Shown here: one piece after another, positions 4,652-49,803 of the stretch
Numbering within the stretch: position 1 is the first letter of the stretch
Layout of the letters: every line of letters begins with the position of its first letter
From: Adineta vaga
Taxonomy: Eukaryota > Animalia > Rotifera
DNA: 64,000 nt
Assembly (NCBI GenBank): GCA_021613535.1
Contig: CP075492.1
Location: forward strand, 3,596,001 to 3,660,000
Reading direction: 5' to 3'
Notes under the pieces: generated by a model
Seen by the model: only the letters and a program-made list of their open reading frames with translations
The model's database searches: none
What the model was told of the DNA's origin: nothing
Program-made: the position numbers and the translations under genes

Positions 4652-6966
4652 ATGGCTTCTGTGGAAAATCTTTCTTCTTCAGTTAATCTTCATCGTAAAA
4701 TAGCACTTGTTATTGGTATTAGTGAATATAAAATAAATAAATCTTTACCAAATGCTATTAATGATGCAAATGGTATGTCGAAAATGTTAAAATCAATGGG
4801 ATTTCTTATTCATGATGGTGAAGCAAAATTAAACTTGACACGCAAAGATTTTAAATTAATATTGACAGCTTTCATAGAATCAATCGAAGATAAAGATATC
4901 GTTCTGTTTTATTATGCTGGACATGGTACACAATGGGAAGTAAGATGAATAATTAAAGATTGTTATTTTTCATTTTCTTTTTATTCTTAGGATCAAAATT
5001 ATTTAATTCCATCGGATGATTTTAAAGTCGAAAATAATGAAAATATTCAATTAACTGGACCTGATTTAAAAAAATATGCAATCAATGCACAAACTCTTTT
5101 GAATAATATTGATGATCGTGATCCATTTCTAACAATATTTCTCTTAGATTGTTGTCGAACTTATCATTTAGGTCATATTGAATCAGAAAAAAATAAAAGA
5201 GGTGATGTAACTAATCGTTCTAAAGGACTAAGTTTAATGCCCCCTAAAATTGGTTCATTAATTGCATTTGCATGTGCACCGGGAAGAGATGCTGATGATG
5301 GAAATAATGGAGAAAAGAATGGATTATTTACAAAATATCTTCTTCAACATCTTTCAACACCAAATGAAGATATTGAAATACTTTTACGTCGTGTTAGAAA
5401 TAATGTCATGGAAGAATCCGAGGATGAGCAAATTCCACATGTGACTTCTGTTCTAAGATATGATCATATTTGTTTATTCAATGGGAAAAAAGGTAAAGAA
5501 TTCTAGAATTTTTATAATCTGATTTAACCCAGAGTGAGATTTGTTTTTGCCAAGAAAAGTATTAAATATCAAAATATAGAACTTGAATAGTGAACGATAA
5601 ATAAAAAACCATTGATAAAAGATTTCTCTTCATGGAAATGATTAGAAAACAAATTATCTTCCAATCATGTTTCCCTGCCTAGTCTTTCCAAAGACACTCC
5701 TTTCGTTTCACTGAATACTATGAGAAATAAGTTCCGAATTTTAGAATTATCTGAATTCATTGTAAAGATCCAAGTATCTCCAATAAACTTTCTTTTCCTT
5801 TTGATTCGATTCAAATGTTAAAATAACAAATACGAAAATAAATGACACCTTTCGAAGATTCATCAATTAAATACAATATATTCGAGTATAATTACACATT
5901 TACAAATGAAACAATTCTTTTGTTAATCGATGAAAAAAAGGACAAATTTCAGAAAGTTTTCTTCGAAGAAATTTCGTATTCTTCTTTTTTTCTGATGAAA
6001 ACCATTTCTTTAGAAATACAATTCAAAAAGTGGAGACAAGATGCAGATATTATTGCGGGAGGAAATGGATTGGGAGGCAGATTAAATCAATTCTTTTATC
6101 CTAGAGGAGTATTTATTGATAAAAACAAAACCATTTTCATTGCTGATTTTGGAAATCATCGTATTGTTGATTGGAAATCAGGTGAGAAAGAAGGAAGAAT
6201 TGTTGTAGGTGGAAATGGAAAAGGAGAGAGAAGAGATCAATTGACTTATCCAACAAATATGATTGTTAATCAACAAAATCATTCAATCATCATTGCTGAT
6301 TCTGAAAACAGACGGATTATTCGGTGGTGGCTGGAACAAACACAAGGATTCAGACGATTTTTCTCGTTTTTCAATCAAAATCAACAAGAAATTCTTATCG
6401 AAAATATTTCTTGTTGGGATTTAACAATAGATCAACATGGATTTCTTTATGTTTCTGATTTGGAGAAGAATGAAGTGAGGAAATGGAAGTTAGAAAAGAT
6501 TAATAAAAACAAAGAAGGAATATTAGTAGCAGGTGGAAATGGAAAAGGAAATCAACGAAATCAACTCAACTCTCCTACTTTCATTTTCGTTGATAAAGAT
6601 CAATCTCTTTATGTTTCAGATCGAGAGAATCATCGTGTGATGAAATGGAGAAAAGATGCGAATGAAGGAGTTGTTATGGCTGGAGGAAATGGTGAAGGAA
6701 ACAGTCTCAATCAATTGAATCAACCTGAAGGATTGTTTGTTGATGAATGGAATCAGATCTATATGGCAGATTGTGCGAATCATCGAATAATGCGATGGTG
6801 TGAAGGAGATGAAGAAGGTTCGATTGTTGTTGGTGGAAATGATTGGGGGAGTGAATCAAATCAATTCAATGGTCCCGTTGGTTTATCATTTGATTTTGAA
6901 GGAAATCTTTATGTTTCAGATAGTTGGAATGCTCGAATCGTTCGATTTGATTTAATTCGTGAATAA
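4652..6966 (+). CDS. Peptidase C14 (caspase/metacaspase-like, bacterial p20 type) fused to an NHL-repeat beta-propeller (NHL copy A); exons 4652-4939, 4991-5492, 6014-6966
   Basis: KIALVIGISEY, catalytic His in FYYAGHG, catalytic Cys in LLDCCR, IAFACAPG, NGLFTKYLL; the phase-1 donor after 5492 (AAA G|gtaaag) matches the phase-1 acceptor tttag|AAATACAATTC at 6014; NHL repeats GGNG..QL..P.G...D..N.R. Confidence 0.85.
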
Positions 6967-8156
6967 AAGCATTTTTTGTTTTTTGATTGAAAAAAGAAAA
7001 GCAAGATTTTTGAGAAATGAAGAAGAAATTTCACGAAAGAAAATATCCTTTGTGAATTTAAACGAATTCTTTTCATCTCAAAAGAAACTACGCAGAAAAA
7101 ACGATTTGATTTGAAATTGATTCGAAAAACAAAATCTTTTTTCAACGGAAAAAGAATAAAATTTCTCTTTAAATTTCACATAAAAAATCACTTTTTAGAT
7201 TATAATAAACCATATGTATGTATTAGAGTTATCTAGTCGTTATTGCTATAAATAATTTTGTAAATTGAAAGTGTTACAATACAAATGAATATCAATTTAA
7301 TTTTCATATTGTATAATTATGATAATATAAGTATAATGATAGATTATAATATCAATCAATTTTTGATTTTCTATGAAATAAATACAAAAACAATTATTAT
7401 CATAGTCTCTTCTTTATTATATTCATTAGTATGTGATTTCTTATATCATTTAATAAGAAAATCATTATTTTGAGGATGGGTGTGGATGTTGATGTAATCT
7501 CATTGCAGTCGAGCAACAAAAATTGGCCAGACAATTGATCCTATTTTTTCTCTAAATAATCTTTTTGTTATATACTTTCTTAGATTGTGCTTTGTGAACA
7601 CTTCACTGGAAAGAATATTCCTAGTTTCTCTATAAATTAAATGTCCTTCTTTTGTTTCTTCGAGTTTTTATATTTTCATAAAGAAAAAATACTGAAGCGA
7701 GGCGTTTCTACGGTTTGTTGATCAACTAGATATGTTATTTTAGGCAAGAAAATATATGAATATGGTAAAAAATTGTCATAGAAACAGCGCAGAAATATTT
7801 TCACTAAAAGAGTATACAGTTTTTCTTTTTAATTTACTAAATTTTGTGCGTTATTCTCCATTTAAAACTTAACTGCCTAGAGTGTGCGAAGTAGTCAAAA
7901 CAAAAACTTTTTTCTCTGACAAACTGGGTGGAATATCTTTAGAATCGATCATCTTTTTCTTATATTGTGAAGATGTAAGAGATGCCAAATTACTATGATG
8001 TAATATATGTTACATATGGTAGTCAACTGGCTTCTTTGTGCATCTCTGGAGGCATCTTCAGGATATGTAATATTACTTCTAAATAGAATATACTTTTATT
8101 TTAGAGCAAGGCATCACAATTTTCTTTGAAGTATTGGAAAACTTTTAACTAGTATC

Positions 8157-47170: not shown

Positions 47171-47571
47171 CTTTTCATCAAAACACAGAATCTCTGAAGA
47201 CGAAGACGAGACAATTTCTTTTGTTCTTGTTAAACGGATTCATTGATCGTTTTTTTTCTTTAAAACAAATTTTCATTTTAAAATCGATTGTTAATTTATT
47301 TTATAAATATTCGAAAGTTTTTCTTGGAAAATTAATGATTTCACAAATCAATTTACAAATTATCTTCTTTTTTCAATCAATATTGATTTTTTCTTCATTT
47401 TCACAGAAAATCCTTTGAATTCAAATCAATTTTGGATCATTTTTAACCGATACTCGATCAAAACAAACAATTTCAATGATCAAACAAATTCATTTTTCTT
47501 TTTCAAAATGAAAATAAAATCAACAAAGGCGATTTTTGTCAAATTTTTTCGTTTGAAGTGCAAAGTTTATT

Positions 47572-49803
47572 TCAATGAATTCTATCAAATCGAACGATTC
47601 GATTATTTTCAGAATCTGAAACATACAAATTTCCTTCAAAATCAAATGATAAACCACAGGGATGACTCAATTGATTTAATTGACTTCCTTGACCATTTCC
47701 ACCAACAACAATCTCCCTTCTTCATCTCCTTCACACCATCGCATTATTCGATCATTCTGATAATCTGACACATAGATTTGATTCCATTCATCAACAGACA
47801 ATCCTTCAGGATGATTCAATTGATTGAGATTGTTTCCTTCACCATTTCCTCCAGCCACAACAACTCCTTCACGAGCATCTTTACTCCATTTCATCACACG
47901 ATGATTGTCTCGATCTGAAACATAAAGAGATTGATCCTTTCCAACAAAGATGAAAGTAGGAGAGTTGAGTTGATTTCGTTGATTTCCTTTTCCATTTCCA
48001 CCAGCAACTAATGTTCCTTCTTTGTTTTCATTAATGTTTTCTAACTTCCATCTTCTCACTTCATTCTTCTCCAAATCAGAAACATAAAGAAATCCATGTT
48101 GATCCATTGCTAAACGGGAACAACGAATATTTTGAATGCGAATTTGTTGTTTTTGATCTCGTGACCATCGCATCACTCGTCTGTTCTCTCGATCAGCAAT
48201 GATGATTGAATGATTTTGTTGATCAACAATCACATCTAATGGATTATTCAATTGATCTATTCTCTCTCCATGTCCATTTCCACCTGCAATGATTTGTCCT
48301 TGTTTTTTATCACATTTCCATTCAACAATACGATGGTTCTGCCAATCAGCAATGAAAATGGTTTTGTTTTCATCAACAAAGATTCCAACAGGACAATTGA
48401 GTTGATTTAATTCATTTCCTTTTCCATTTCCTCCCGCAACAGTTGTTCCATTTAGTTGAAATTTCGTTTCTAAACAAAGAAAAGAAAAAGGAATTGTGAA
48501 AAAGAAAATGAACAGTTTATTTTTTCGTTTTTTAATCAAATAAAAATTTGAAAATAAGAAAAAGAAATTTGATTTGAATAAAATCATTTCTGATTTCGTG
48601 AAATTTCAAATGAAAAAGTGAGTTTTGAATTAAAAGTAAATAAGAAGTCTTTGATTTCACTGAAAACTAAATTATCAAAAAGAAGAAAATGTTTTGAATT
48701 GATCAATTTAATTTGATAAACGAAAAATAATTCGAAATTCGTAAATCAATAAAAATGTTTTTATTCTTTCAACATTTGATTTTTGTGAATATTCGAATAA
48801 AGAATTAAATCAATAAAAATATAAAATCTTTTCATTTTTCGTCATATTTTACATCATTTTTCAATATTTTCTGTTCATTTAGTGTTCTATAAAAGATTTG
48901 TATCAGAATGTGGATATGTAAATGAACATTAACATATCTATTTTCTGTCTTTACTTAACTCTTCATTATCTTAAAAATGTCTAATTGAAGTAAAAGTCAG
49001 AAATGAAATGTTTATGATTGTGAATATGATAAAATAAAATAAAGAAGGAAAGACATTTGATTATCTATAAGAAATAAAATTATGAAAAGAGTCAAAGATT
49101 TCTCTTCATCATTCGAATGAAGAACATCAAATTATATGGAATCACAGAGAAAATAATTCAATTTCATGTTATATTAATTTGACTTGTCTTTTTTTTTCAT
49201 TAGAAAATAACGATCTTTTTAGACATGAATTTAAAATAATTTTTTCATTTCAATAAAACAAGAATTGAAAACTTTCAACTTACTCTTTCTTGAAATAACA
49301 GAAATTTCATTAAGAAATCCTTGACTCCGTTCTTGGATTGAAATATTTGATGGGTTGTTCAATTCTTTAGTCATTTGATTTAATTTTCTTCTTAAATCCT
49401 TCAAATCAATTTCATTAAATTCATTTTCTCGTTGAATTTCTTTGATTTGTTTACTTAATTCGTTTAAGTTTTGTTCGATGTCTTTAAAAGATGTTTTGTA
49501 GTTTTCTAAAACGTTTTGTCGACATTTTCCGGCTGTTTGTCGAATAATTTGAATTGAATTTGTTTCCCATTGATCAATTCGTTTGATCAATGAATGATTT
49601 ATTGGATTTTGTTTTTGATCGTTTATCGTATGTCTAAATTGATCATAATCATTGATAATAATATTTAATTCTTCACGTAATGCTTGATAATGTTCATTTA
49701 AATCTGTTTGACAAAATTCCTTTGAACAACCTCTACAAGGAAATGTAATTCTTTTATATTTCAGACATTTGAAACATTGTGTTGTGTTGTTTGCCGTGGC
49801 CAT
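47572..49803 (-). pseudogene. B-box-like + coiled coil + NHL, copy F; exons 49803-49284 and 48469-47572; 1-nt frameshift before the last blade
   Basis: gaagggagatt at about 47716 versus gaaggggagatt in copy C; after correction the frame reads GGNGQGSQLNQLSHPCGLSFDFEGNLYVSDSENNRIVRFDRIH*. It may be a homopolymer sequencing error. Confidence 0.8.

Follow-up and report, generated by a model that had tools for sequence, protein, structure and literature searches.

The stretch analysed here, hereafter the window, comprises 64,000 nucleotides of the Adineta vaga genome (G000:C3:3596001-3660000; assembly of 100.8 Mb in six contigs) and holds six exons encoding NHL propellers (copies A to F), preceded in copies B, C, E and F by an upstream exon that encodes a Cys/His motif and then a long helical region (tblastn with one copy; Table 1). 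A first look at the A. vaga genome returned 928 candidates for this NHL family. The propellers share a conserved scaffold that is interrupted, at equivalent positions of each blade, by hypervariable codons whose ratio of nonsynonymous to synonymous rates (dN/dS, omega) exceeds 1 between paralogs, and we regard the six genes as probable members of a germline repertoire of fixed binding surfaces.

Copy C is expressed as a two-exon gene of 471 codons, since one contig of run X11, a run guessed to be RNA, joins position 23357 to 23661. This spliced contig agrees with the germline sequence, in a comparison over 1,901 bases of copy C that relies on short contigs, some of them matching several paralogs; all 24 public runs consist of assembled contigs, from which rare variants are dropped. 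Exons were searched singly, and the database protein P0001 (472 amino acids) stood in for the product of copy E, whose two-exon model has the same length (472 codons) and whose product is identical across its final 290 residues to the annotated 472-residue A. vaga protein I4U23_011709. The germline NHL exons are complete and open as judged from their open reading frames (ORFs), with the exception of a 1-nucleotide frameshift in copy F.

Pfam, AlphaFold and Foldseek agree that the six NHL repeats fold as a six-bladed propeller. The propellers of the copies matched Pfam family PF01436 (NHL; E 3.5e-26), and the model of copy D, built with 23 paralogs, had 24 strands, four per blade, at a predicted local distance difference test score (pLDDT) of 92.8, the nearest folds all belonging to TRIM-NHL proteins, namely Thin, TRIM71 and TRIM2/3 (Foldseek E 1e-20 to 1e-18). 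A Met opens the N-terminal exon, which carries a single Cys/His motif. Pfam detected no RING in this exon or in P0001, and no B-box in the N-terminal region even at E values up to 1; the N-terminal model contains a small hairpin at pLDDT 57-78, and Foldseek returned no match to this model below E 0.8. In UniRef, the name 'B box-type domain-containing protein' is given to two N-terminal fragments of A. steineri relatives. The helical region behind the motif has the character of a coiled coil, with helices predicted at moderate confidence at residues 32-65, 71-126 and 131-149.

Hypervariable codons on one face of the propeller

The original prediction had located the differences among copies A to F at two motifs per blade, D-x-x-N and QL-x-x-P-x, within a nearly invariant scaffold. 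The residues it quoted for D-x-x-N (blades 1, 2, 5 and 6) and QL-x-x-P-x (blade 1) were all correct in our translations, and the flanks it singled out are indeed close to invariant, only 1 of 36 nucleotide columns of RIMRWCEGDEEG and 1 of 24 columns of VDEWNQIY being variable among the six copies. We add a third variable spot per blade, the x of G-N-G-x-G, and a variant form in blade 3, where the loop between strands d and a is shortened (I-x-C-x) and both x are equally variable. Membership of the variable set was decided solely by place within the motifs: all six blades contribute both x of D-x-x-N, five blades contribute the three x of QL-x-x-P-x and the x of G-N-G-x-G, and blade 3 adds its two loop positions, giving 34 codons. 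The blade-3 pair lies outside the motifs first proposed and was added to an initial set of 32.

The predicted clustering at these motifs was confirmed; it far exceeds chance and extends through the whole family. In the alignment of copies A to F, 174 of 298 columns were invariant and 22 carried at least four different residues, of which 18 fell within the 34-codon set (hypergeometric p=4e-16). Adding 22 close paralogs that lie on four other chromosomes brought the number of paralogs to 28; of their 32 most variable columns, 24 belonged to the initial 32-codon set (p=6e-22), and the two blade-3 positions were the next two columns in the ranking. The 34-codon set again supplied 28 of the 34 most variable columns in 117 homologues (A. 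steineri, A. ricciae and Rotaria), with a mean entropy of 2.81 bits at the 34 positions versus 0.68 bits elsewhere. Over-represented at the variable positions are Cys (7.6x), Tyr (3.9x), Trp (2.5x) and Ser (2.4x), as is Thr, whilst aliphatics are depleted; with R at 6.0%, K at 5.9%, E at 9.6% and D at 4.0%, these positions are on the whole not basic. Variation at these codons extends to every codon position and every base. That their third positions might be frozen was ruled out by the value of pi at third codon positions (0.38, versus 0.10 in the scaffold), and many of the third-position changes are nonsynonymous.

Both kinds of motif lie on the same face of the propeller. Each repeat runs from a strand IVAGG through a 14-residue loop (GNGxGxxxNQLxxP) to a strand xGIFVD, which a short turn connects to a strand IYVAD; the D-x-x-N turn then leads into a strand HRIxxW, followed by a further loop. 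The chain opens with a lone IVAGG-type strand and closes after an HRIxxW-type strand. This arrangement fits the usual closure of a propeller, in which the N-terminal strand serves as outer strand d of the last blade; on that basis the long loop is the d-a loop and D-x-x-N the b-c turn. Whatever the strands are called, the two are alternate connections of an antiparallel sheet and so share a face. The b-c and d-a loops define the top surface of NHL propellers, where Brat binds RNA (PMC4015489). By the strand topology of the AlphaFold model, the variable sites thus map to the top face to which they had originally been assigned.

Diversifying selection had also been proposed, and dN/dS between paralogs did exceed 1; selection was assessed by class-level likelihood, independent close pairs and counts of single-nucleotide differences. 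In a codon likelihood analysis on a fixed tree, omega was 1.87 at variable codons versus 0.53 in the scaffold, and omega=1 was rejected at the variable codons (twice the log-likelihood difference, 2dlnL, 18.75; likelihood-ratio test p about 1e-5). The result was replicated in the 22 paralogs outside the window (omega 1.97, 2dlnL 15.8). Tree length reached 31.5 substitutions per codon at variable codons compared with 4.0 in the scaffold. In ten close pairs, codons with nonsynonymous differences and codons with synonymous differences only stood at 211:7 in the variable set versus 285:116 in the scaffold; restricted to single-nucleotide differences, nonsynonymous and synonymous counts were 109:5 at variable codons (omega about 6) and 210:115 in the scaffold (omega about 0.6). 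Synonymous changes accordingly made up 4% of single-nucleotide differences at variable codons, against a neutral share of 0.21 (p=3e-7). Pooled Nei-Gojobori dN/dS at variable codons was only 1.3, a value on which we do not rely because multi-hit pathways inflate the proportion of synonymous differences near saturation. Because these codons make up a single surface and evolve with dN/dS above 1 between paralogs, they are best interpreted as a diversified recognition surface.

Stability, mosaicism and the origin of the variation

Variation between paralogs is not matched by variation within lineages. Ten protein clusters of A. steineri were assembled at 90% identity or more, their members being alleles, copies from different isolates or very recent copies. 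Across these clusters 33 of 340 columns at variable positions varied (9.7%), compared with 247 of 2609 scaffold columns (9.5%), giving no excess. In five of the clusters the variable positions were significantly less variable than the scaffold (2/170 versus 104/1305 columns, p=4e-4), and in 68 A. steineri pairs all 34 positions were unchanged despite 3 to 38 differences at other residues. Two clusters that mix diverged copies show the paralog pattern, with 13 and 8 of the 34 positions varying. Because variable codons within clusters do not exceed the scaffold in variability, each paralog retains a set of its own; a constant mutator, or an arms race still running at each locus, would hardly leave such stability.

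Between paralogs, variable codons are decoupled from the scaffold around them. The proportion of variable positions that differ was 0.71-0.81 at any synonymous divergence of the scaffold (0 to 0.2), close to the 0.74 expected from random draws from the pools of residues at each site. Where variable codons had changed, half differed at 2-3 nucleotides. Recombination between copies is also evident. Copy E and L012 on chromosome 1 are identical over blades 1-3, including all 17 variable codons, and different over blades 4-6, and copy E contains a patch of blade-1 type within its blade 4 that, from alignment of blades 1 and 4 of copies B, D and E, appears to be a short gene-conversion tract. The scaffold is reticulate, 39% of informative site pairs failing the four-gamete test with less incompatibility at short range, and the pairwise homoplasy index (PHI) permutation test on the scaffold gave p=0.006. 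Mosaic genes, the blade-to-blade patch and the reticulate scaffold fit gene conversion. Between some members of the chromosome-2 cluster, such as L002 and L003, homology is limited to the NHL exon with roughly 40 nt upstream and 190 nt downstream, and has sharp edges.

We give a probability of about two in three to the full account in which this cluster is part of a germline repertoire of many fixed binding surfaces on one NHL scaffold. The six genes would be members of a very large bdelloid family of cytoplasmic proteins that combine a zinc-finger-like motif, a long coiled coil and an NHL propeller, in which some 34 codons, structurally equivalent in every blade, line the top face as specificity-determining positions. 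After duplication, positive selection would drive these positions apart until paralogs differ essentially at random, and purifying selection would then keep the set of each paralog, whilst the rest of the exon would be held near-identical by purifying selection together with frequent exchange among paralogs, through ectopic gene conversion or recombination. Judged from the fold, the face and the coiled coil, the proteins are likely to be oligomeric binders of the cytoplasm, in which the face would bind ligands and the coiled coil mediate oligomerisation. In close relatives of the propeller from A. steineri and A. ricciae (P0097 and P0060), an N-terminal death effector domain (DED) or NAD:arginine ADP-ribosyltransferase domain replaces the zinc-finger/coiled-coil module. 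Such relatives, considered with the residue make-up of the face, point to a recognition role that is linked to an effector and may be immune-like. RNA may be the ligand by analogy with Brat or LIN-41, although the variable positions are not basic overall.

Several observations weigh against this account. The likelihood test rested on a single tree for an alignment that shows recombination and whose sites are near saturation, the solvent exposure of the variable residues is deduced from topology, and the conservation within lineages comes from a sister species at the protein level, with cluster members not proven to be alleles or orthologues. The strongest tension lies on chromosome 2. There, pairs such as L002 and L003, whose flanks are unalignable, have 0 synonymous differences in 264 scaffold codons, although 21 of their 34 variable codons are different. 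Recent segmental duplicates provide three further pairs, in which flanks differ by 0.09-1.7% versus 27-41% of variable-codon nucleotides: L003/L008 by 0.09% in the upstream flank (1 of 1076 nt), 1.6% in the scaffold and 31% in variable codons (32 of 102 nt); L004/L005 by 0.7-0.9%, 2.4% and 27.5%; and L002/L011 by 1.7%, 2.5% and 41%, respectively. The L003/L008 region is itself a patchwork of tracts, as its downstream flank is just 80-85% identical. To accommodate this pattern, the account requires either short conversion tracts or selection against the overwriting of variable codons, and this is its weak point.

These same pairs are the best argument for programmed or burst-like diversification, in which variable codons would be rewritten in a site-directed manner and the scaffold copied faithfully, perhaps in connection with duplication or conversion. 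The frequency of changes at 2-3 nucleotides also favours it, as do the blade-1 variable segments of L003 and L008, neither of which has a second match above 94% identity in the haploid assembly. Nothing, however, points to a local mutator. Synonymous differences in the scaffold show no gradient with growing distance from variable codons (0.089, 0.055, 0.075, 0.069, 0.077), variable codons that retain their amino acid are synonymously different without excess over the scaffold (7/108 versus 116/2371), and the transition/transversion ratio (kappa 1.66) is ordinary and lacks a deaminase-like bias. No machinery resembling a diversity-generating retroelement or a cassette donor was found, the sole reverse transcriptase nearby being encoded in one of two ORFs at 20751-22157 (-), between copies B and C, that matches RVT_1 (E 1.8e-6) and is an ordinary retrotransposon fragment, not a diversity-generating element. 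The A. steineri clusters keep their variable positions, and copy E and L012 have retained all of theirs in blades 1-3. Active rewriting of this kind is therefore unlikely. So too is the version in which directed bursts tied to duplication or conversion would give a copied NHL exon a new random set of the ~34 loop codons before any synonymous change; if it were true, such rewriting would be a germline diversity generator in an asexual animal. The further suggestion of the original prediction, a surface like that of antibodies or variable lymphocyte receptors (VLRs) or one produced by targeted mutation, is not supported, given that synonymous differences do not rise near variable codons, that no such machinery was found and that the positions are conserved in sister-species clusters.

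Shuffling of cassettes, by which short conversion tracts would move ready-made loop segments among blades and paralogs as in chicken immunoglobulin genes or variant surface glycoprotein (VSG) mosaics, is consistent with the patch in copy E, the half-gene mosaic with L012, the reticulate scaffold and some cassettes common to cluster members such as L004, L005 and L006. The loop cassettes are nevertheless mostly singletons (27 distinct blade-1 QLxxPx versions in 28 paralogs), the two blade-1 segments tested, those of L003 and L008, lack a donor above the 94% level in the haploid assembly, and close pairs differ at scattered single codons instead of in blocks (runs test: mean z -0.2; 14 of 259 pairs below -2). 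The bulk of the diversity does not come from ready-made cassettes, and shuffling is improbable as its explanation. Somatic diversification within individual animals, like that of antibodies or VLRs, has nothing direct in its favour beyond the resemblance of a fixed framework with spots like complementarity-determining regions (CDRs). All variation seen lies between complete germline genes, each copy being a complete open exon, the spliced RNA contig of copy C, as assembled, matches the germline sequence and variable sets are stably inherited in A. steineri lineages, and we consider this explanation very improbable. Relaxed constraint, under which unconstrained loops would simply drift, is equally hard to credit. 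The variable positions do lie in loops and the likelihood estimate is near saturation, but both sets of paralogs gave an omega significantly in excess of 1, synonymous changes were far rarer among single-nucleotide differences than neutrality predicts, the positions are conserved within lineages as much as the scaffold or more, and their composition is strongly biased.

Relation to known systems

In fold, the closest known proteins are the TRIM-NHL proteins (Brat, LIN-41/TRIM71, TRIM2/3 and Thin/TRIM32), which provide the best structural match to the C-terminal six-bladed NHL propeller and likewise place a zinc-finger-like motif and long helices N-terminal to it. The rotifer proteins are not full members of that group, as they have no RING and their B-box is unconfirmed by Pfam or fold search. 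They further differ in number, with hundreds of copies per genome versus 3-5, in the hypervariable residues of their top face, which are not basic overall, and in the DED or ADP-ribosyltransferase N-termini of some relatives. TRIM5alpha and TRIM22 offer another parallel, being coiled-coil proteins with a C-terminal recognition domain whose loop patches show dN/dS above 1, and cytoplasmic recognition is a likely shared logic. Their recognition domain has a SPRY rather than an NHL fold, and selection on TRIM5 acts between orthologues or alleles, whereas here it acts between paralogs and the lineages tested are conserved; the A. steineri clusters, with no excess at variable positions, do not show a TRIM5-like arms race.

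In logic, the closest systems are the contact residues of KRAB zinc-finger proteins (KZFPs) and PRDM9 and the germline leucine-rich repeat (LRR) repertoires of plant NLRs. KRAB zinc-finger proteins and PRDM9 similarly carry a few hypervariable contact residues at fixed positions in repeat DNA that is otherwise homogenised by concerted evolution, and KZFPs keep these residues between orthologues and differ in them between paralogs. Those repeats are tandem DNA-binding units within one gene; in the rotifer, each repeat is one of the six blades that close into a propeller, and the repertoire consists of separate genes. Lamprey VLRs, antibodies and NLR LRRs also place exposed hypervariable positions on a repeat scaffold to obtain many specificities, and within this group germline NLR repertoires are the nearest. 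The complete, open germline exons and the concordant copy C contig speak against VLR-type somatic assembly, and the rotifer genes show neither incomplete germline genes with donor cassettes nor evidence of hypermutation. Diversity-generating retroelements likewise confine variation to few codons within invariant sequence, and many of the variable codons here are NNT; unlike those elements, in which changes fall only where the template has adenine, the NHL genes have neither a template repeat nor a reverse transcriptase of the appropriate type, and their changes span all bases and lie between separate genes.

Expansion of NHL genes in A. vaga is on record in passing, without a CDR-like architecture (PMC3846280). 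No description of an NHL-based repertoire or of a variable-position architecture in rotifers was found in the literature searched. The repertoire looks inherited, large and composed of fixed binding specificities, not antibody-like or actively mutating. How the anciently asexual bdelloid rotifers keep pace with their parasites is still an unsettled question. Hundreds of NHL genes with different binding faces on one scaffold, some family members being fused to death-effector or ADP-ribosyltransferase domains, are a candidate recognition repertoire for this problem. The ~34 specificity-determining positions are offered for binding or swap work, and the family illustrates cleanly how concerted evolution and diversifying selection can operate in combination.

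Gene structures and surroundings of the cluster

The exons, the loops of copy D and the patch in copy E are listed in Table 1. Copies A and D both retain the conserved acceptor, and a zinc-finger/coiled-coil exon was not found in the 6 kb preceding copy A or in the 4.3 kb upstream of copy D. In copy A, a 14-amino-acid insertion separates blades 2 and 3; the region concerned (6322-6440, +) gave no sign of an obvious intron, and the open frame of this copy extends 57 codons 5' of the acceptor (5842-6013). Copy F has a 1-nt deletion near 47715 (within 47700-47730, -) in the Gly codon that closes a GDEEG motif, which places blade 6 in another frame and reflects either a young pseudogene or an assembly error.

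Table 1. Exons, hypervariable loops and other features of the NHL genes, in window coordinates
Feature	Position	Strand	Basis
Copy A NHL propeller exon	6014-6966	+	tblastn, translation; acceptor ...TTTAG|A placed by homology
Copy B NHL propeller exon	15286-16190	-	tblastn, translation; conserved acceptor
Copy B N-terminal Cys/His zinc-finger-like and coiled-coil exon	16933-17452	-	tblastn; donor placed by homology to E and P0001
Copy C N-terminal Cys/His zinc-finger-like and coiled-coil exon	22844-23357	+	ORF; GT..AG joint 23357->23661
Copy C intron, 303 nt, GT..AG	23358-23660	+	joint in run X11; splice sites read
Copy C NHL propeller exon	23661-24562	+	tblastn, translation, RNA joint
Copy D NHL propeller exon (numbering reference)	28889-29787	+	tblastn, translation; AlphaFold model
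Copy D blade 1 d-a loop, codons 16, 24, 25, 27 (GNGxG, QLxxPx)	28936-28971	+	entropy
Copy D blade 1 b-c turn, xx of D-x-x-N, codons 42-43	29014-29019	+	entropy, model
Copy D blade 2 d-a loop, codons 66, 74, 75, 77	29086-29121	+	entropy
Copy D blade 2 b-c turn, codons 93-94	29167-29172	+	entropy
Copy D blade 3 shortened d-a loop (I-x-C-x), codons 115, 117	29233-29241	+	top-entropy columns
Copy D blade 3 b-c turn, codons 132-133	29284-29289	+	entropy
Copy D blade 4 d-a loop, codons 160, 168, 169, 171	29368-29403	+	entropy
Copy D blade 4 b-c turn, codons 186-187	29446-29451	+	entropy
Copy D blade 5 d-a loop, codons 210, 218, 219, 221	29518-29553	+	entropy
Copy D blade 5 b-c turn, codons 236-237	29596-29601	+	entropy
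Copy D blade 6 d-a loop, codons 260, 268, 269, 271	29668-29703	+	entropy
Copy D blade 6 b-c turn, codons 286-287	29746-29751	+	entropy
Copy E NHL propeller exon	40623-41521	-	tblastn, translation
Blade-1-type patch inside blade 4 of copy E, roughly 40 nt (putative conversion tract)	40993-41045	-	DNA alignment, blades 1 and 4 of B, D, E
Copy E N-terminal exon	42137-42656	-	tblastn; two-exon model
Copy F NHL propeller exon	47572-48469	-	two reading frames needed
Copy F N-terminal exon	49284-49803	-	tblastn

Elsewhere in the genome, most NHL exons of the chromosome-2 cluster (630-715 kb; L003, L004, L005, L006, L008 and L010) lack a zinc-finger/coiled-coil exon in the 1.5 kb that precede them. 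Close to the starts of two chromosomes lie family members (G000:C3:109238-110116 and G000:C5:122698-123576) with exactly equal score and identity to the query, which suggests a very recent inter-chromosomal duplicate. In the copy C region (22800-24700), only about 55% of sampled 31-mers of copy C occurred in even the best same-organism DNA runs (X1-X9), whose contigs across the NHL exon measured only 80-150 nt, and we conclude that the NHL family breaks short-read assemblies. Several families neighbouring the NHL cluster have been reported as expanded or foreign in bdelloids. The neighbours in the window include an FG-GAP repeat protein (13533-14564, +), a rhodopsin-type seven-transmembrane receptor (45158-46117, -), a 675-residue TPR protein (56587-58614, +) and a GDP-mannose 4,6-dehydratase/epimerase-type gene of bacterial appearance (62555-63640, +).

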